Source: Klebsormidium nitens (lineage: Eukaryota > Plantae > Klebsormidiophyceae). Taken from it: a stretch of 64,000 nt of DNA. Each line of letters begins with the position of its first letter. Within the stretch, counting starts at the first letter, position 1. The stretch lies in assembly GCA_000708835.1 (NCBI GenBank), contig DF237339.1:1-64000 (forward strand), written 5' to 3'. A program made the position numbers and the translations under genes. Under the pieces are notes generated by a model. That model was not told the origin of the DNA. It worked only from the letters and a program-made list of their open reading frames with translations, and searched no databases. Below, one piece after another: positions 16,137 through 27,271 of the stretch.

Positions 16137-19100
16137 ATGGGCAATCAACTTGCCCGGACGACGCAAGTCTCCCCGTCTGACTACTATCTCCATGACCTCC
16201 CCAACAATGTCGTGTACAAGGCGACGTTGGGAGGGGGAAGGTTTCTCAAGACTGTGCAGTGCGTTCATGATGAGGGGCTCGTTGTGGCGAAAGTCTACTT
16301 TAAACGAGGAGACACACCGACGCTGAAGGTGTGAAGAACACCTCCAGCTTCAGTTCTTTGCTGTGCAATTACAACAACCTGCTCAAAGGCTTGTTCAGTT
16401 TCTCATTGCGAGGGGGCCTTTAATGATCCCTGTGCTGGGTATGATGCGTTCGTTTGAACATGTTTAAGTTTTCGGACATTGTTTGCTTGGAGAATGCTGT
16501 TTGATCCTAACTGAAAGAGTCAGCTAGAGGGGACTTGCAACGAACAATGTGTACAAAGGTCGCTCCAAAACTGAACTTGTATCTGATTGGCCTTCAACAT
16601 AGTCGGAGGTTCTCAATGTCAGATACTGTGTGCCCCATCCCTTAGTTCTGGATTCTCAACAGAGTATCTCACTTGGTTGCTGAGAAAGGTTGCTGTCATG
16701 ACAGGATCATGCTATGTGGTGGCACCAGAGTTCATTTGCACGTTGCTATCAGCTGAGACTAGTGCAGGCACTTGACAGTATTTTCTAATTGATCAGGTGC
16801 AATGAATAACACCACCAATAAATTGGTGGTCTGGGCACGTACTTAGGCCCTCCATTCTAACTCTGCTTCTGACGTATGTAGCTCACCCGTTGCTTGAGCT
16901 TCTCTTCTTTCGTATCAGAATCTGGAAAATGATGAATTTCCGATTTTAAACTGCGTGTTGAAAAGTAGGACGTGCTCCCATCACCGCCGGTTACACACCG
17001 GTGACACAACCTGCCTGGGACGCAACGCCCCCCACACTGTCAAAGTGCAAACGACCATGACGCTTCAGTGGATAATTTGGAGTACAAGCTGGGACAAGAG
17101 TCTTGTGTTGCTACATACTCAAGGCTTGTCGAATCACTTTGCACATCTATCTTAGGAATTGAGATGTCAAGAAACGATTCTATCTCAGGTTTACGAGCGC
17201 CGCCTGGCGGAGATCCGGCAGAAGCTCGCCGACGTCCCACTGTCGCACGTGTGGCCGTTCCAGCGGTGGGTGGACACCGACAAAGCTGCGTACCTTGTGC
17301 GCCAGTACTTCTACAGCAACCTCTACGACCGCATCAGCACGCGGCCCTTCCTGACGGCCATCGAGAAGAAGTGGCTCGCCTTTCAGCTGCTCCATGCGGT
17401 GAGTCCGTTCAGCATTGGGCTGACTTCTCAGATGCGGTTGGGGTGCTAAGAGGACCTGGTTGTCATCACAGTCCAAACTTCGCACACTAAAGGTGGTGCC
17501 AGTTTGATTGATTTGCAGAGGTGTTTCATTGTTGCCCGCTGCCGGAATGGGTGTAAATGTCTCGATACCTCTTCATGATCGCACAAGGTGGTGTTCCACC
17601 ATTATGAGGGCACCTGACAAGTCCTGGGCAAATCAATAGAGAACGAGGTGGATTGGCGTTTGTTTCTAGGCTCCTAAGTTCCTCGTGGCACTTTTGTGAC
17701 ATAGACGCTTTATGACACAACTCACCAAGTCTCAAGCCGCCACAGCTTGACCACCCCCCCTGGTGTCAAACCTGCAGCTCGCGCAGAGCCACGATAGAGG
17801 CGTCTGTCATGGCGACATCAAGTGCGAGAACGTTCTGGTCACAAGTTGGGGCTGGGTTTACTTGGCGGACTTCGCATCTTTCAAACCGACGCACCTGCCG
17901 GCCGACAATCCTGCCGACTTTTCCTTCTTCTTCGACACTGGGGGGCGGCGGCGCTGCTATATTGCACCTGAGGTAGGAGGTTGAAGGATTTCCGTACTTT
18001 TCCTGGTCACTGAAAGTACGGCGGCCTTGGGGTGAGACCTTGTCATAGGAGAGCAGAAACAATCGACGAAGACCCCGTGGAATTTGGAACATGCTCGCTC
18101 AACCGGATCCATCTGTCTCCGGCCGTTTCTCTCAGAAAAAATCATATACAATTCATACAGAAGTTGACCTTGTTGAGCTGGATTTCTTTCCAAGCTTCAT
18201 AAAATCCTCGTTCTCTGACCTACATCTTGAGAATCTCATCCTTGTTCTGGCTGTAAGGTTTCGCGTCGAGCAATTTGGGTGAGCGCTCATCTCCGTTCCT
18301 CTGGAGCAATGAGGGCGCTTCGATCGATCCCGTGGTATTCAAGGTACTTACCGGGTACGGGATGTTTCTAGAGAGGACAGTCTACAAAGCTGGACGCGGA
18401 CCGGAGATGCGAAGTTAGTGAGCCTAGCAGGTTTCGGTCGATGCGGACTCTATCAGCAGGGCTCCGGTTTGCTCAGAAAGTCGTTTCGCCTGCTTATTCC
18501 TTATTGTCCTTTTATGCAGCGCTTCTTCGAGTCCTCCAAGCCACCCCCCGACGGCGACGCGCCCCTCGCGCCGGCGATGGACATCTTCTCGCTGGGCTGC
18601 ATCATCGCGGAGCTCTTCCTGGAGGGCCAGCCGCTCTTCACGCTCTCGCACCTCCTGCAGTACCGTAACGGCCTATATGACCCTGCTGCCGCTGTCAATA
18701 AGGTACGCTATGGCCGAAATTGACGGCGACTTCTTCTCGGGACGTTTGTGGGTCCTCTGTTTTGCCCTTGTCCTGAACTGGAAGTCTACCTTTTGTGGCC
18801 TTCATATGGTGCTCGAAGCAGCAGCAAGGTTACCCGAACCGCTCTGGATCCGGCTGCTGATATAGCCTCGACAAGACGGAATCCAAAATGCAATTGTCTC
18901 ATATGTGCGTGTTGTGATCCCTCTATCCGGTTGGATGTTGTAGAGATCTTCTGCGACCTTCGATTGGGTGCGCCTTTGAGTTCGTCAAAATGGACAGTCA
19001 AGTAACATTGGCGGCACTCTGCGGCCATCCTCGATAAATGCAAGGACGGCCCATCTGCGTCTAGGGTCTCTTCAAGCTGCTCTTAGGCCGACGTTGCAAC

Positions 19101-22100
19101 TTTAGCTTGACGCGTTGCGTTCTGTGGCTTACCCCGCTGATGGATAATTCCTCCGGTTTTCTCTCGCTTTTCCGTACAGCAAATGAAGCCTTTGAAGCCA
19201 GCTTGACGCTTCTTGAACGTTCATACCATTCCCAATTGCTCCATTATACCTAATGCGTGGAGGGCTCACGTGTTTAGTTCTACGTGAAGCTTCTATTCGC
19301 TCTCAAGTCCTCGCTTCTTGACACCTTGCGTGGACTCTGCTTGACCTCGTTCCTTCTCGATTTGTAGATCCAAGACCCCGGCATCCGCTCCCTTATCTTG
19401 CACATGATCCAGCTCGACCCGTCCGCGCGCCTCTCCGCGCGCGAGTACCTCTCCCGCTGCGCCGCGAACACCCTCCCTAGTTACTTCTCTTACCTCCACG
19501 ACTTTTTCGGACGCCTCGTTCCGCTGGACGCGGATACTCGCGTTTCCGTTACCCAGGAAAGCTTCCCGGAACTTTGCCGGAAGATCCTCTCGGAGACGCC
19601 CGGAAAGGCGGGGGTTCAGGCTGATTCGCTGCGGATTGAGGGGGCCGTAACGCCCCCGGAAAGTGCCCCCGAGAGCGATGTGAATAAGGTTCCCGAGTTC
19701 TCGCGGTCCAAGTCGCTTCCCGCCGAGCCCCGCCCGCACTCAGCCGCTGTCACGATTGACACCGGCCAGCTCATTGCTGACATCAGCAACATTCTGGGCT
19801 CGCCGAATAAGGCGCCGGGGGTAAGCCCGGGCTCACCAGGGGCCCCCCCGAAAGAAAGATCAAACGGTGCCGACCCTGGGAAAGGGAGCCCTCGGCAACT
19901 GTGGCCCCGGAGCGTGTCGTTAGGGGGGGCACAGGGCGGACGAAACTTACAGAATGGGGGGTCAGGACCAGCGGGGCAGAGGAGGGGGGTGACGGGGCCT
20001 GCTGCGTCGATCATGGGGAGAGACGGGGCGTTTATAGTGGATGAGCGTCCGGAGGGGGGGAGTTCTGGAGGGAATACCGAAGGGGGGGATCTGGCGGCGA
20101 GCAGGCTGAAGGTGACTGCTGCGGACGCGCAGAGAGCGGCGGCGCTGGCGATTGGTGAAGTAGTCACGGAAGAGGTGAGGAATCAGCTCCGGTACATTCC
20201 TTTCGCCTTGTCTAGTCTTGATGCGTGCTATCTTTCACTGTTGGTCACAGATTCGAGGATTGGGCCAAACAAGTCTGCAATGTTTGACAGTAGGACCTGT
20301 AGTATGTCGACTTGTGGTTCTAAAGGCTGGTATACGTGGACGATCGGTTCACAAATCTTGATGAACCACTTTGAGCGCATTCCTTGTCGCGATACTTTCT
20401 GATAACGCTTCTCTTCAACAAGCGAAGTCTTTCGTAAGACTCCGCAAGGGACGGTTACTCGTTTGAAGGATTCTAAACCTAAGCTCTCAAAGGTGGTCGT
20501 CTTTATGCAGACAACTTCTTCCCCACCTCTCATCTTCTATCATACGCCACCCATTCATCTTTGTTCATGCCCGCCTTCGTTTCCTCAGGTCCTCGAAACC
20601 CAGGTTCGCGACGGCCCTGACGGCTCTTTCGCTGAGCGGCCGATCTTCGCCGGCGGAGTCGCGTGCGGTCGCCGGAAGGAAGAGATCACCCTGCCAAAAG
20701 AAGGCAACTGGACTTGGGAAGGCGACTGGGCGGTCGATGTCGGGGGCGCGGTCGACGGCGAAGGCTGGCAATACCGGTCCGACAACCGGAGCGGAAACGG
20801 AAAGGAGGCCCGATCGTCGCCCCTGGGAAGACGATCGAGCGGCGCAGACGAGGTTTCGGAACGGAATCCGCCAGGGGAAACGGAGAGTAACGGAGCGGGC
20901 CTGGTCCGGGCCCCGAGCGGCGACCAAGAGAAGCGGCGCCAGTCTGCTTGGTCGCCACTCTGCACCTCGGACGCGCTCAGGCGGCGGCGGCGGTGGGTCC
21001 GAAAGCGCCGGAGGCGGCCCTCGTTTCCGGTACTTCTGGAAGACACCCCGCTAGTTGTCGAATGCCCCCCCATGGACCCCCCCGAAACGGTAACGATCTC
21101 CGAGGGCATGGTTCTGATCGCCGCCCTGCTCTGCGCATGCGTCCGATCCGTGAAACTGGCGCAGGGCCGCCGGACCGCGCTCTCGCTCTTGAAAGACACC
21201 GCGATGCACTGTGACGACGACGCGAGACTCCAGAGGATCGTTCCCGTCGTCGCCGGTCTAGTTCACGACCCAAGCGCGGCCGTCCGGTGCGCGGCGGTGT
21301 ACGCCCTCTCGGACGTCCTCTCCGTGGTCCGAAGCTTCCCGCTCTCGGACGGTCAGATCTTCCCGGAGTACATCTTCCCCAGCCTATCGATGCTCCCACG
21401 CGACCAGGAGGAAAGCGTACGGATCGCGTATGCGGACAGCATCGCCAAACTCGCGTCCGCAGCCCAGCGCTTCCTCGCGTGCTCCCAGCACATGACCAAC
21501 GAGGTTACCGCCGCGGTTACCCCGAGACCCGCCTCCAAAACCCCGCGCCCCCCCCGTCCAAATGCAGCGAAACCCACCCCCCCGGGGCACGCTCTCCATT
21601 TCGAAACCGAGCTGACCAACCTCCGGGAAGCCGTGGCACGCGTGATCCAAGAACTCGTCACCGGGCCGAAAAGCACGTCGGCCGTCCGCGCCGCGATCTT
21701 GCGCCACGTGTCCCCCCTCTGCACGTTCTTCGGCCGACGCGGCAGCCACGACTTCCTCCTCCCGCTCCTCATCACCTTCCTAAACGACCGTGACGATCGG
21801 TTACGGGCCGCGTTCTTCGAGCAAGCCGCGTCGTCCGGCGCACGCACGTGGGGGGGCGACGCGCACCTGGTCAATAAGCCGTCCCCCGTGGCGAGCGCTT
21901 ACATGCTCGAGGACCGGGGGCTGGGCCGTGCGAGTTTGGAGGCGTTTCTGCTGCCGTGCATCGAGCAGGCTCTGAACGATACCGAGGAAACGGTGCTCGC
22001 GGCGGCGCTGGGCTGTCTTACCGCGCTGACGGTGCGCGGGCTCCTGCGGAAGAAAGTGATGCTGGAGGCGACCGAGTGGACCGCGCCGCTGCTGTGCCAC

Positions 22101-25100
22101 CCGGCGAGATGGGTATGTTCTATTGCCGGCGTCGGCTTGCTGATCTTGTTTCTGGCTTTGAGCATTCGACCGTTGGACCTTTCTTCATTTGGATCATCTC
22201 CCGCTACAGTTGCATGGAGGCACCTTGAGTCGTTGATAAAATCTGCGTACAACATCCGTAACATCAAGCAGTTCTGATAAGCTTAAAGACGTATTTCGTT
22301 CTGTACTCGGTCACTTCTCGACGGGCGGGAGTCACTCATAGGCGAGAGCCAACGATTGGTTTAGCGCATGCTTGATCAACAGAAAACCTTAACCTGCATT
22401 GTATTGTAAAGATGGAAAGGATGTTCTTCAAGATGCGACTCTGTCCCTCGTGGGGACGTTCCTCGAAACGCAAGCCGTCATCAAACGCGCATGCTTTCAG
22501 ATCCCGCCTCAAACTAGGGACCCTACATGTCTTCTCAGGTGCAACGTGCGGCGGTCGCCTTCATCGCCACGGTTGCCGCCAGCCTGCCCCCCGCCGATGT
22601 CCACGCATTCCTGGCACCGACAATTGCGCCGTCCCTCAAGAAGGAGCCCCTCAGTCTCTCCAGCGAACCCGCCCTTCTGGCCGCCCTCAAAACGCCCTTG
22701 CCCCGGGCACTTTTCGACATGGCCCTTAGTAACGCCATGCTGTCTGCGTCCCAAGCCTTTGGAACCACCCGGGGGATCTCCCCGGGAGGTGGACGCAGGC
22801 CGGACGCCCGGTTTCCGGCCGCTCGGGAGAGTGGTCCGGCCAGGCGGAACCCGCCGAGGCCGGAATATCCCACCGGCGGAATGCGTAGGAATCCTGGAAA
22901 GGCCCTGTCGGACGACAGGTTGCAGTCTGGCGCGGAGGCGCCAACGTCCGGAAGAGGGCCTTCTGATGGAAAAGCGGGCGGAGGGGATTCGAGCAGCGCC
23001 CACGTGATCGAGCAGTGGCAGGCCGTGCGGAACCAGGAAGGGGGGGGTCCGGAGCCGGGCGTTTCCGGGGGGGGGATCGACGAAGATAACCAGAAGCTGC
23101 GGTTCATGGAAGGGTACATTAAGAACTCGTCGAGCATCATGCAGCAGCGAATGAGAAACTGGGAGAGCGAGAATCAGGAGAAATTGCAAGGGGGCGAGGG
23201 GCGCGGAGGTGGCGGGGAAAGCGAGGGCGGGTTTGGGGCTGCAAACGGGGGCCTGGAGGCGCAAGCGGGGATTCCGGTGTACAGCGTTCCGCTCCTCGAC
23301 CGGCGGCCGGGGTCTCGGTCGAGCTCGCCCCCTCCGGCCGACCCGCAGGTCAGTGCTGCTCTGCCCTAACGGTCATCATCCGAGTGTCTTCTTCATATCT
23401 AGCCCGTTCTATGTTGTTGCCTTCTACTTGACTTGTTGGAACATACCTGGCTTTCTTGGGACCAGGATCAAGTTTTACCTTTTGAAGATTTGCCGCTCAG
23501 GATACGGATGCGGCAATAGTTGGGGCATACGGTCATAGTAACGAGCTCTGCTGGTTAGCATTTCCGACCGGTTCTTTTCTGTCAGCAACCCTTTCAAGCT
23601 TCGGTTTAGATCGTTTCTATGCATTTTCAAGTTCTACTTCTCGTCTCCTAGGAGCCCCGCACATTTCCTTTGCCATCAGTCTCTGGCTGCCTTTGACAGC
23701 CCCTGCTTGCTCCCCAAGAAACCGCAAAGCCCTAAAACAACCCCTTAAGCTCTAAAAGAAGCCCTTAAACAAGTCGTAAACCCGCCCTCTCGCACTTTCC
23801 CCAGGGTCCTCGCACCGTCCCCGTGAACGCCGACTGGGGCCTCGTCTTTGGCGTCCGGGGCAGTTCCCCGACCGCCTCCATCGCACACTACCACAAAAAC
23901 CCGCAGACCCCGAACTTTCCCCCAAACAGCGATGCTAGCTGGGCTTCGATGGCGACCGCGCACTCGTCGATGCGCGCCTCGCAACACCTGCAGCGGTCAG
24001 CGATCGTGGCGGGACAGGCGCCGCCGTTTGGGGGTGTGCCGCATCCAGGGTACGGAGAGGGGGGGTAAGCGCTCTGCTCTTTCTTTGGGAGTCTTCTTCG
24101 TCAGTAGTGGATTCGTTGCGGTCCGTCCAGAAATGCTGCTTATTCGATGAGCAGATGCTCTTGATTTTGTTTGCAGAAATTCGCTTTGTAGACGTTGAAG
24201 AGTCTGCATGACGTTCCTAGGATCCCTTATAATTCGCTGCTATGGCACTCTTTTGCAAGGGACCGTTAGGTGCTTTTAGAGCCTCCCCTCTCTTTTACTT
24301 CGCGCAATTGTTACTTGTGATGGTCCCTTCTTAAGATTCGAAGCACAATGTAATCTTGAAGCTTATGCAGGGTGAACCCTCACCGACGTCCTGGTATGTA
24401 GAGGCGTATAGAGAAAAGGGAAGTAGAAAAGAACAGAAGAGGTAGGAAAGAGGGTCTACAACTGATTAGTTTGAGGAGCGCGTTCAATTCTCTGACGACC
24501 TAGCCATTGCTCCGCCTTCAAGTTTACTATGTCAATTCCAAGCCCTAGACCGAAACACAGACTTCGAACCCCATGCCTGACACTAAACCTCAACGCTGTT
24601 TCCCTTTTTCCCAGGCCCGTTCAGACCGCCCGCGCTCCACCTTTCCCCTCCCCCGACCAGCCGTCAAAAATTGCCCCCCCGGCCACCAAACCCGACGCTG
24701 ATAGTTCCGACCCGCTGTCTTCCCTCCTCGACTTCTCCCAGCCGTCCGATGGCGCCACGTGGCGCCCCAAGGGCGTCCTGATTTCACATCTGCAGGAGCA
24801 CACAAAGGCGATCAATCAATTGGCGGTCGCCCGAGATAACGTTTTCTTTGCGAGCGGGTCGGATGACGGGACCGTTCGCATCTGGGACTGTCGGAGGCTG
24901 GAGCGTGACGTGTCATTCCGGAGTAAGCTGACGTATGATACGGGTGGGGGGAGAGTTACTGGGGTGGAGATGCTGGACGGGTATGACGTGGCGGCGGCAA
25001 CAAGCGGGGGCAGCATCCACGTGGCAAGGTGAGCCGGTCGGAAGGATTATGACGTCAGTGTCCCGAGCAGAAGGCTTGTCCTCGCAATATTTTGCTTCAA

Positions 25101-27271
25101 AGTTGCTGATGTTGTCGAACATAGAAGTATGAACGATGAAAAGTTTTGCCTTCTTGACGAAGCGAGGCGCAAGCTGGTTAGTTCTCGCCGAATGGGCTAA
25201 TCTCTCGTGCTTAAATATGCAGTGTAATACCCACTTGATAGTCACTACACGAGATGACTTTTGGATAGTCACCTGCGCACTCTATTCATGAAAGCTATTG
25301 CATGTTGCATTTTGAACCCCCATTGTTCGTGTTTCGTACTCACCGTCCAGCTCTCGCTTTCTACCCCAGAGTCGACTACATGCCCAAGCGCCCCGGCACC
25401 GAGCGCGAGCGCGCCACGTACGCAGGCTTCGCGGACGTCCGAAAGGTCTCTCCCGACGAGGGGTCCGTCATCTCACTCCACCGCTTCGACCCAGAAAACG
25501 GAACCGGCGACCCCGCACGTCTAGTTTTCAGCACGCAGCGGGGGGGCATTCACCTGTGGGACTTGCGAGTGGGTAAGGCGGCGTGGGTGATGAGAGGGGA
25601 CGCGAAGCACGGACTGCTCACGGCAACGGCCCTGGACGAGACACGTGGCCAGTGGATGGTCAGCGCGACAGCCCGCGGAGTGCTCACGGTGAGTTGCCGC
25701 GACTTGGGTGAGACTTAGCAAAGCAGTCGCTTTCAATGCTTTCGTTTGACCCAGGTTTTGCGATGACGCTGGTTGACACCTCGCAAGAGGCGAAGGTGTG
25801 CCCCTTCATCCTTCATCCTGCCCGTGACAATATACTTGTTCTTGCGTGACGTTTTCGCGTACAAAATTCGACTCTCCTTTCAGTGGCGGAAGACGCACTT
25901 TTGCTATCCCTGTTTCCACTTCTAAGCTTCTCAAAATTCCATCCCAACATCACAGCGTCGTCATTCGTCTGCTGACGTCATCCCCCTAGCGTCACCTGCT
26001 GACGTCATCCCGTGCGCTTCCCTACAGTTATGGGACCTCCGCTTCCAAATCCCGGTGCACTCGTGGCAGCATCCGCTGGCGTGCCCCATCGAAGCCCTCG
26101 CCCCAGTCCTCCCCGGGTTTGCTCCCCAAATCCTAAACCCCGACGAAACCCAAACCCGCCCAAACCCCTCCGTGCGCCCACTTATATACGTCGCCGCCGG
26201 CCAGAACGAAGTCTCGCTGTGGAACGCGGAGGACAAGTCGTGCTGCCACGTGTTCAGGGTGCCCCAGGAGGGACACGTGTCGGCACCTCCTGCGGCGCTG
26301 GCCGCCCCCCAAGGGAATCTGAAGCTTCCGGGGGGTAACAGGAGGGCAGCCGTGCAGCCCCCCCGGCCGATGAGTGTGGCGTCGCTTTTCTGCGTGGAGG
26401 AGCTACGGGTGCCTCCGCTAAGGTGAGACTTGGAATGTCTTGCGATTTTCAAGGTTGACGTCATGCGTGGGCTTCTGAGAATACGCAATATTGCTCTCGG
26501 GGCTTGGACGGTCCAAGCTCCGGGAGGCTCGTGGACTTGGCGTACAAGCTGGACGCGCTTGCAGGATTCAATGACTTTGCTGATCACATCTTTGATGCAC
26601 AGCCAATCATTCCCAAATTACCGTGGAAGGTTCCGCTACACGAGATACTAAGTCGTACAAACGAGAAACCGTTGCCACTCGGGTTAAGGCCGTATCATCC
26701 ATCAGGCCAGATCTCGAACATCCTCGAGGGGTTGCACGAATGCAGCTACATCCTTGCATCATCTCTGCTCGCAACCTTTTTCCAGAGCAAACCGTCGACT
26801 GTGATTTTCATTCTTACCAAAAACGGGCTTTTCTGATGCAGGTTACCTGGCGCGCGCGCGCTGCTCCCTCTGTTTGGCGGCTCGGCCCTTCTCACTGCCG
26901 GCACCGACTGCCGCATCCGTCACTGGGACCGCATCCACGCCGACGGAAACTTCATCGTTGCGGGACCAACTCTCCGATCGAACGGTCAGCAGCTGCCGCA
27001 GCCCCGGGTCGAGACACGTGTCATCTCAGGCGTCCGAGTCACGCAAGAGCTGCCGCAGCCAGTGGAAGAAAAAAGTGCGGCGGCCGGGTCCCCAGAAGCT
27101 GCGCCCAGCGGTAAAACAAGTGGGCAGAACCCGAACGTTCTGACGGCTGCCGCCGTAGCGGACAGTGCGGGGTGTCATAGGGACGCCATTTTGGCGCTGG
27201 CTGGGGCGCAAACCAGCCAGAAGATTCTTATCTCTGCCAGCAGGGACGGCGTGATCAAGGTATGGAAGTAA
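16137..27271 (+). CDS. VPS15: VPS15/PIK3R4 regulatory subunit of class III PI3K (kinase-like, HEAT, WD40) with an inserted DysF domain; about 12 exons
   Basis: N-myristoylation-type start MGNQLARTT. Kinase-like region with [14 protein letters not shown] and [41 protein letters not shown] repeats ([28 protein letters not shown]). WD40 region ([24 protein letters not shown]) and C-terminus [10 protein letters not shown]. Exons read directly include 16137-16328, 17189-17398 and 17778-17972, plus exons starting at 20589 and 26028. Confidence 0.95.

Follow-up and report, generated by a model that had tools for sequence, protein, structure and literature searches.

What lies between the pseudokinase and the HEAT repeats of a green algal VPS15, a regulatory subunit in the VPS34 (class III PI3-kinase) complex that is usually treated as a universally conserved scaffold of three domains (pseudokinase, HEAT, and WD40)? 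The question was raised by a 64,000-nucleotide (nt) stretch of Klebsormidium nitens DNA (contig DF237339.1 of assembly GCA_000708835.1, positions 1 to 64,000; the whole stretch is referred to as the window), in which the VPS15 (PIK3R4) gene occupies positions 16137 to 27271 of the + strand, from an MGNQLAR start to a DGVIKVWK end and a stop codon. [quoted passage not shown] Profile searches, motif comparisons, and the predicted fold all bore this out, and residues 524 to 673 of the encoded protein are almost certainly a DysF domain of the dysferlin/Pex24/TECPR1 type.

Sequence and predicted fold of the insert

The kinase region of the predicted protein ended near amino acid (aa) 319 and the HEAT region began at residue 700, leaving a gap of about 380 residues, with the DysF segment at residues 524 to 673. 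The first strand residues of the domain, EVVTEE, are encoded at the end of exon 5 (positions 20157 to 20174, + strand) and aligned with the profile positions that match VEEVFENQ in dysferlin. After intron 5, a 14-residue DysF stretch opens exon 6 at position 20589, and the remainder of the domain (exon-6 residues 1 to 144, protein residues 530 to 673, positions 20589 to 21020, + strand) matched only DysF domains in the PDB. Within this remainder, the tryptophan half of the arginine/tryptophan (Arg/Trp) stack formed a 28-residue block (20691 to 20774) that aligned with a 26-residue block of dysferlin, a variable loop predicted to be disordered followed (20790 to 20939), and a 24-residue block with the tip Trp and the Arg-rich last strand (20949 to 21020) aligned with a dysferlin block of the same length; all three lie on the + strand. 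A short spacer separates the last DysF strand from the HEAT repeats. The peptide and positions given in the sequence-only reading (GEVVTEE ending at 20174, exon 6 starting at 20589, and the basic block ending at 21020) are exactly those encoded on the + strand.

All DysF signatures were present in residues 524 to 673. The first-strand motif [YF]ExQxR and the stack motifs WxWxxW, GWxY, and RRRRWxRxR were found, and the stack blocks aligned residue for residue with those of dysferlin (the Arg/Trp stack residues of TECPR1 are listed in PMC10476172). Residues L35, P36, G39, W41, W43, G45, W47, G59, W60, and Y62 (exon-6 numbering) were invariant in all seven VPS15 inserts compared, as were W121, R132, R134, W136, R138, and R140 to R142.

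Searches with the window segment alone returned few matches. Its match to the Pfam family Pex24p (PF06398) was marginal (E = 0.93), and a phmmer search of 177,635 distinct PDB sequences matched only the inner DysF of myoferlin (E = 0.21) and that of dysferlin (E = 0.30). A phmmer search of 1.84 billion representative sequences, most of which are prokaryote-style open reading frame calls on eukaryotic contigs and which returned only exon-sized fragments, gave 14 matches, mostly VPS15 fragments with the same insert; a TECPR1-like protein was matched in its second DysF domain (E = 9.7e-4). Homologue queries with exons returned 11 proteins, mostly fragments; a query with the DysF region of the orthologue P0028 returned only itself, and one with an alignment of P0029 and P0028, which was swamped by low-complexity words, returned four matches.

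Pooling the inserts gave stronger results. A profile built from seven VPS15 inserts matched only DysF structures in the PDB (4CAH, E = 2e-7), and a 17-sequence profile built from VPS15 inserts only (A3) matched the inner DysF of dysferlin (4CAH) at 2e-13, full-length dysferlin at 6e-11, myoferlin at 4e-9, and TECPR1 (8P5P) at 8e-6, with the first unrelated match at E = 0.93. Its alignment to DysF covered positions 7 to 121 of 124, and an hhalign comparison with a TECPR1 DysF gave a probability of 95.7%. Pex24p was the only Pfam family matched by the orthologous inserts (five of seven, best E = 6.7e-5), all of them under the Pfam gathering cut-off (best 22.5 versus 26.8 bits). The profile check that had been suggested for the domain thus came out divided, with the window segment sub-threshold by itself and the 17-insert profile placing it firmly among DysF domains. 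A bacterial-type protein with four CARDB domains (P0003, 1029 aa) also matched the window DysF segment (E = 2.9e-7) through four weak stretches of the form LPxxGxxWxGDGxYxxxxVD at residues ~514 to 996. This match was judged to be a false positive summed over repeats and probably does not reflect homology.

An AlphaFold2 (AF2) model of the window insert had a mean predicted local distance difference test (pLDDT) score of 56, and its top Foldseek and VIA-align matches were all DysF domains, at Z scores of about 3. The poor quality of this model was attributed to the disordered loop of about 50 to 55 aa (pLDDT < 50 at exon-6 residues 68 to 117), and a compact orthologous insert (P0028, residues 422 to 554) was therefore modelled instead. 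That model (pLDDT 72, predicted template modelling score 0.61) showed the DysF finger fold, in which a long antiparallel pair of strands has a loop wrapped around it. In VIA-align, it matched dysferlin 4CAH at Z = 10.2 (100 of 109 residues, 3.2 Å), myoferlin at 9.6, and the N-terminal DysF (N'DysF) of TECPR1 (8P5P) at 9.3, and the next unrelated chain among 48,161 scored 4.0. Foldseek (probability 1.00) returned DysF structures in rows 1 to 13 before E values rose above 4; target template modelling scores were 0.62 (4CAH) and 0.71 (8P5P). The top three clusters in a structure search of the ESM Atlas belonged to the TECPR1 and peroxin (Pex24p) families. The structural comparison with ferlins and TECPR1 that had been called for thus agreed with a DysF fold through the compact orthologue, with the model of the window insert itself remaining weak. 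From these models, the domain is predicted to comprise a structured part of about 100 residues and a lineage-specific disordered loop of about 50 aa.

Distribution, conservation, and annotation of the insert

Human VPS15 was compared for the same interval. Residues 1 to 327 of P0028 aligned with human PIK3R4 residues 1 to 346 and residues 588 to 798 with human 371 to 570 (overall E = 7e-100), so that a gap of 24 residues in the human protein corresponds to about 260 residues in P0028. Human PIK3R4 and yeast Vps15 (7BL1 and 5DFZ) share with the green proteins the MG signal, the pseudokinase, the HEAT/helical solenoid, and the WD40 propeller, but have no DysF domain, whereas the green proteins have some 260 to 380 residues at the hinge, including a folded DysF. 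None of the VPS15 chains in the PDB matched the DysF profile. The sequence-only reading had held that yeast, animal, and land-plant VPS15 have only a linker at this position. This agrees with the human gap and the PDB search but does not hold for all land plants, as Sphagnum carries the insert.

Carriers of the insert were found widely in the green lineage, in every case at the same position and with the boundary VVTEE-V[YFL]ExQxR. Two close relatives of the window organism carry it (P0027, 91% identity; P0001, 77%), as do Volvox reticuliferus (a partial GenBank entry labeled “hypothetical protein”), Sanguina aurantia (in which the gene model holds only the N-terminal half), a set of chlorophyte-like contigs (L001, L022 to L025, and P0004), and a set of moss-type contigs (L002 to L009). 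Two Sphagnum proteins of 1732 aa each, KAH8965439.1 of S. fallax (P0048) and KAH9566295.1 of S. magellanicum (P0053), carry the insert at residues 424 to 571. Both are full-length, clear VPS15 orthologues, and GenBank labels them only “hypothetical protein.” The intron after VVTEE falls at the same codon and in phase 0 in the window and in a Sphagnum-type locus (L003, ~8466|8611). Apart from the window, the DysF loop was seen only in close relatives; the Sphagnum-type domains lack it, as do those of P0008, P0004, and Volvox. The carriers show that the insert is not peculiar to the lineage of the window.

The insert was not detected everywhere. In L010, the kinase and HEAT regions lie 426 nt apart with no insert detected. 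No DysF motif was found in the ~2.1 kb between kinase and HEAT in L011 to L014, L016, and L018, which are chlorophyte-like metagenome contigs (JAABU*). The L011 to L018 clade has VPS15 exons that are about 84% identical, and L015 retains only a degenerate C-terminal half (GWSY...WRRRTWIN), as if the domain were still being lost. The insert was likewise not detected in P0034 and P0038, for which a green affiliation is only assumed. To our knowledge, Arabidopsis VPS15 (~1494 aa) lacks the insert. Very probably the common ancestor of Viridiplantae already had the insert, with loss or degradation afterwards in some lineages, and the simplest reading of the sequences would be a single gain that predates the divergence of Chlorophyta and Streptophyta, with losses thereafter.

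The DysF core is under purifying selection. In comparisons of the window with two relatives, the ratio of nonsynonymous to synonymous substitution rates (dN/dS) was 0.19 and 0.11 in the structured core and 0.04 to 0.06 in the HEAT region. In the more distant comparison, the loop (0.31) and the spacer (0.59) evolved faster than the core.

In moss-type genes, a second intron follows VDxSW (L003, 8784|8946). It falls in the DysF loop in which Volvox has a poly-Ala/Gly insertion and ferlins have the nested inner DysF.

Full-text literature searches found no paper that connects VPS15 with DysF. A 2012 survey (PMC3407069, Table 3) lists Volvox carteri XP_002959907.1, a VPS15 candidate, as “Pkinase+Pex24p” without comment, an entry which indicates that an older Pfam release once flagged the domain. 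The claim that the architecture is undescribed therefore holds insofar as no paper discussing it was found, and needs qualifying by this single table entry. Current Pfam did not detect a DysF domain in the full-length Sphagnum proteins or in P0061, and PF06398 was absent from the precomputed Pfam lists for the homologue matches. It had been allowed beforehand that the novelty would vanish if the insert proved both common and annotated in orthologues; it is common, but it is not annotated. Together with the “hypothetical” labels of the Sphagnum proteins, the oversight in Pfam exposes a gap in annotation.

Candidate functions of the VPS15 DysF domain

Four groups of proteins with DysF domains were compared with VPS15. 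The inner DysF domains of dysferlin and myoferlin (4CAH and 2K2O) were the best matches in both sequence and structure, sharing [YF]ExQxR, WxWxxW, GWxY, and RRRRWxRxRR. In ferlins, the domain is nested in a second DysF, among the C2 domains of a tail-anchored protein, whereas VPS15, a soluble kinase scaffold, has it only once, with the disordered loop of ~50 aa in the window. The N-terminal DysF of TECPR1 (8P5P) has the same fold and likewise sits on a scaffold of the autophagy pathway, but its insertion site is a propeller and not a kinase-HEAT hinge. The Pex30/Pex24 family (PF06398) was the sole Pfam family matched, and peroxin clusters were returned from the Atlas; unlike VPS15, Pex30 proteins are reticulon-like membrane proteins of the endoplasmic reticulum. 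VPS13M of Viridiplantae, like VPS15, is a green-lineage membrane-trafficking scaffold with a DysF insertion, which is regarded as ancestral and has reportedly been lost in Arabidopsis (PMC10683392). It differs in that its host is a lipid transporter and its DysF lies in the VAB domain. VPS15 would thus be the third autophagy- or lipid-transfer-related host of a DysF domain, besides TECPR1 and VPS13M.

Two of these systems have ligands. The TECPR1 N'DysF binds sphingomyelin through exposed Trp residues at its tip, and it is the only human DysF domain that does so (PMC10476172). Pex30 DysF binds phosphatidic acid (PMC12101078 and PMC12101077), and by analogy phosphatidic acid is a plausible class of ligand for the VPS15 domain. 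In human PI3KC3-C1, the class III phosphatidylinositol 3-kinase complex 1, the N-myristate and pseudokinase of VPS15 first sequester the parts of VPS34 that bind membranes and later set them free (10.1101/2023.09.28.559894). A DysF finger placed directly after the pseudokinase would share this membrane-proximal arm, with the myristate and the kinase domain of VPS34 as its neighbors, and could serve as an additional membrane- or lipid-contacting element on this catalytic arm. It would then bias where or when the complex engages membranes and produces phosphatidylinositol 3-phosphate (PI3P). The invariant tip Trp and the strongly basic last strand may contact an anionic or plant-specific lipid, for which phosphatidic acid is the best precedent. 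Taken whole, function included, the statement that these VPS15 proteins have a fourth folded module, a DysF β-finger at the pseudokinase-HEAT hinge acting as a membrane or lipid contact, is modestly favored; lipid or membrane binding by the domain, argued from analogy, has about an even chance.

Several observations weigh against this statement. The model of the window insert itself was poor. [quoted passage not shown] The apparent loss or decay in the L011 to L018 clade and in P0034 and P0038 suggests that the domain is dispensable in some contexts. The tip residues of the sphingomyelin sensor (R76, W77, L88, L89, I142, D143, K152, K153, W154, and C84/C157 in TECPR1; PMC10476172) were also largely absent, as placed in VPS15 by motif register against dysferlin and the TECPR1-like sequence P0014. 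The Trp of ENQRW (W77) is replaced by Arg or Glu (ETQVRD/E), and the tip Trp is no longer preceded by Lys-Lys (QSAW), so that only a W154-like Trp and possibly one Cys are kept. In P0014, the Trp of DKHW (KHW in dysferlin) ahead of the last strand aligned with the invariant VPS15 Trp and was taken, on this motif only, as the counterpart of human W154. Green plants and algae are not known to contain sphingomyelin. The loss of W77 and of most other residues of the sphingomyelin site, in organisms not known to have this lipid, favors contact with an anionic or plant-specific lipid, and a sensor of membrane damage resembling TECPR1, as the sequence-only reading had entertained, is improbable.

Other explanations of the insert were weighed. 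In one, the finger does not bind lipids but has a regulatory role through protein-protein or intramolecular contacts, in which it might dock onto the pseudokinase or onto the kinase domain of VPS34, or bring in a partner specific to the green lineage. The absence of most human DysF domains from damaged membranes (PMC10476172) is compatible with such a role, as are the description of DysF function as “not clearly established” (PMC10683392) and the position of the domain at the kinase-HEAT hinge, near described autoinhibitory contacts (10.1101/2023.09.28.559894). Both DysF domains with a defined ligand (TECPR1 and Pex30) nevertheless bind lipids; moreover, in the VPS15 inserts an invariant Trp immediately precedes the last strand, matching that of dysferlin and of the TECPR1-like protein, and the last strand itself is strongly basic. 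A regulatory module was accordingly considered possible but doubtful, ranking below lipid or membrane contact and above a TECPR1-like damage sensor.

Another idea is that the domain is merely tolerated, as the relic of an old exon-shuffling event that placed it in a flexible linker, and has little present function. It would fit the apparent losses, including the degenerate C-terminal half in L015, and the large disordered or poly-Ala/Gly insertions that are accommodated within the domain. The stack residues are nonetheless all invariant from Volvox to Sphagnum, core dN/dS is 0.11 to 0.19, and the fold was predicted with confidence, which makes a relic very unlikely. An artefact (a chance low-complexity stretch rich in Trp and Arg, a retained intron, or a misassembly) might be suspected from the sub-threshold Pfam match of the window segment alone and from the low E value reached by the bacterial CARDB-repeat protein through four weak stretches. 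The profile E value of 2e-13 with coverage of the full domain, the Z score of 10.2 with a clear gap to unrelated chains, spliced contigs from several studies, and independent genomes that include the annotated Sphagnum proteins effectively refute this explanation, and its probability is negligible.

Structural work has made the myristoylated VPS15 pseudokinase central to the activation of VPS34 on membranes, and an additional folded domain (the fourth), of a type that binds lipids, stands exactly at that hinge and has been kept from Volvox to Sphagnum. For plant and algal cell biology, it offers a genetically tractable handle on PI3P targeting in the green lineage. A further and more tentative suggestion is that the ancestral green PI3KC3 had a lipid-reading VPS15 DysF that coupled PI3P synthesis to a particular membrane lipid or membrane condition (phosphatidic acid, for example, or lipids exposed under stress) and that was secondarily lost in angiosperms, in parallel with the loss reported in Arabidopsis VPS13M; this broader scenario, which would amount to a regulatory layer in autophagy and endosomal sorting confined to algae and bryophytes, is considered unlikely, though possible.

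Gene model and transcript contigs

The identification of the gene as VPS15 in the sequence-only reading was upheld by the exon model, tblastn, and Pfam; the Gly2 signal and pseudokinase, the helical/HEAT domain, and the WD40 propeller that mark VPS15 were all found. Exons 1 to 7 were placed on the + strand at 16137 to 16328, 17189 to 17398, 17778 to 17972, 18520 to 18702, 19368 to 20174, 20589 to 22112, and 22539 to 23348, all with GT..AG introns, and together translated to 1307 aa without a stop. With P0061, a relative of full length (1724 aa), as the query, tblastn covered positions 16137 to 27268, from MGNQLAR through the end of the WD40 region.

Residues 1 to 319, which comprise the MG signal for N-myristoylation and the pseudokinase block, are encoded by exons 1 to 5 (16137 to 19544, + strand), which were 47 to 83% identical to P0028 per exon in tblastn; the kinase part of P0028 in turn matched human PIK3R4 residues 1 to 346 at E = 7e-77. 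The translation of exon 5 continues with a low-complexity linker rich in Gly, Pro, and Ser (aa 320 to 523; 19545 to 20156, + strand), in which a Pfam scan found no match. This linker of ~200 residues, which precedes the DysF domain, is probably disordered, and its DNA contains runs of G; with the DysF loop, it accounts for the length of this hinge (~380 residues versus 24 in human). The HEAT/VPS15 helical domain starts at aa 700 (21099 to 22112, + strand), and exon 6 matched the Pfam families VPS15-like_hel (PF22956, E = 3.8e-16) and HEAT (E = 2e-13). The exons of the WD40 propeller lie at 24658 to 27268 (+ strand) and were 42 to 54% identical to P0061 and P0030 in tblastn; Pfam WD40 was found in the orthologues P0048 and P0061, which were scanned in place of the WD40 exons of the window. 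Rfam and repeat scans of the VPS15 gene gave no match.

Splicing was assessed with assembled (Logan) contigs from four public runs of four studies, placed on positions 19300 to 23400, for which the library type was only guessed to be RNA. Intron 5 (20175 to 20588, + strand; 414 nt, GT..AG, phase 0), at the junction that the sequence-only reading had singled out for a transcript check, was missing from contigs assembled for X1, X2, and X9, three runs from three studies, in which 20174 is joined to 20589. Loose contig ends in run X12 agreed with the same joint, and the next intron (22113 to 22538) was skipped in all four runs. A literature search for the SRA run identifiers of these contigs found no paper that mentions them. 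Run X1 also contained one 232-nt contig (20360 to 20591) that spans the 3' part of intron 5 into exon 6 at a depth of 2.4, versus ~43 for the spliced form, and that was put down to leftover unspliced RNA, to retention of the intron, or to carry-over of DNA.

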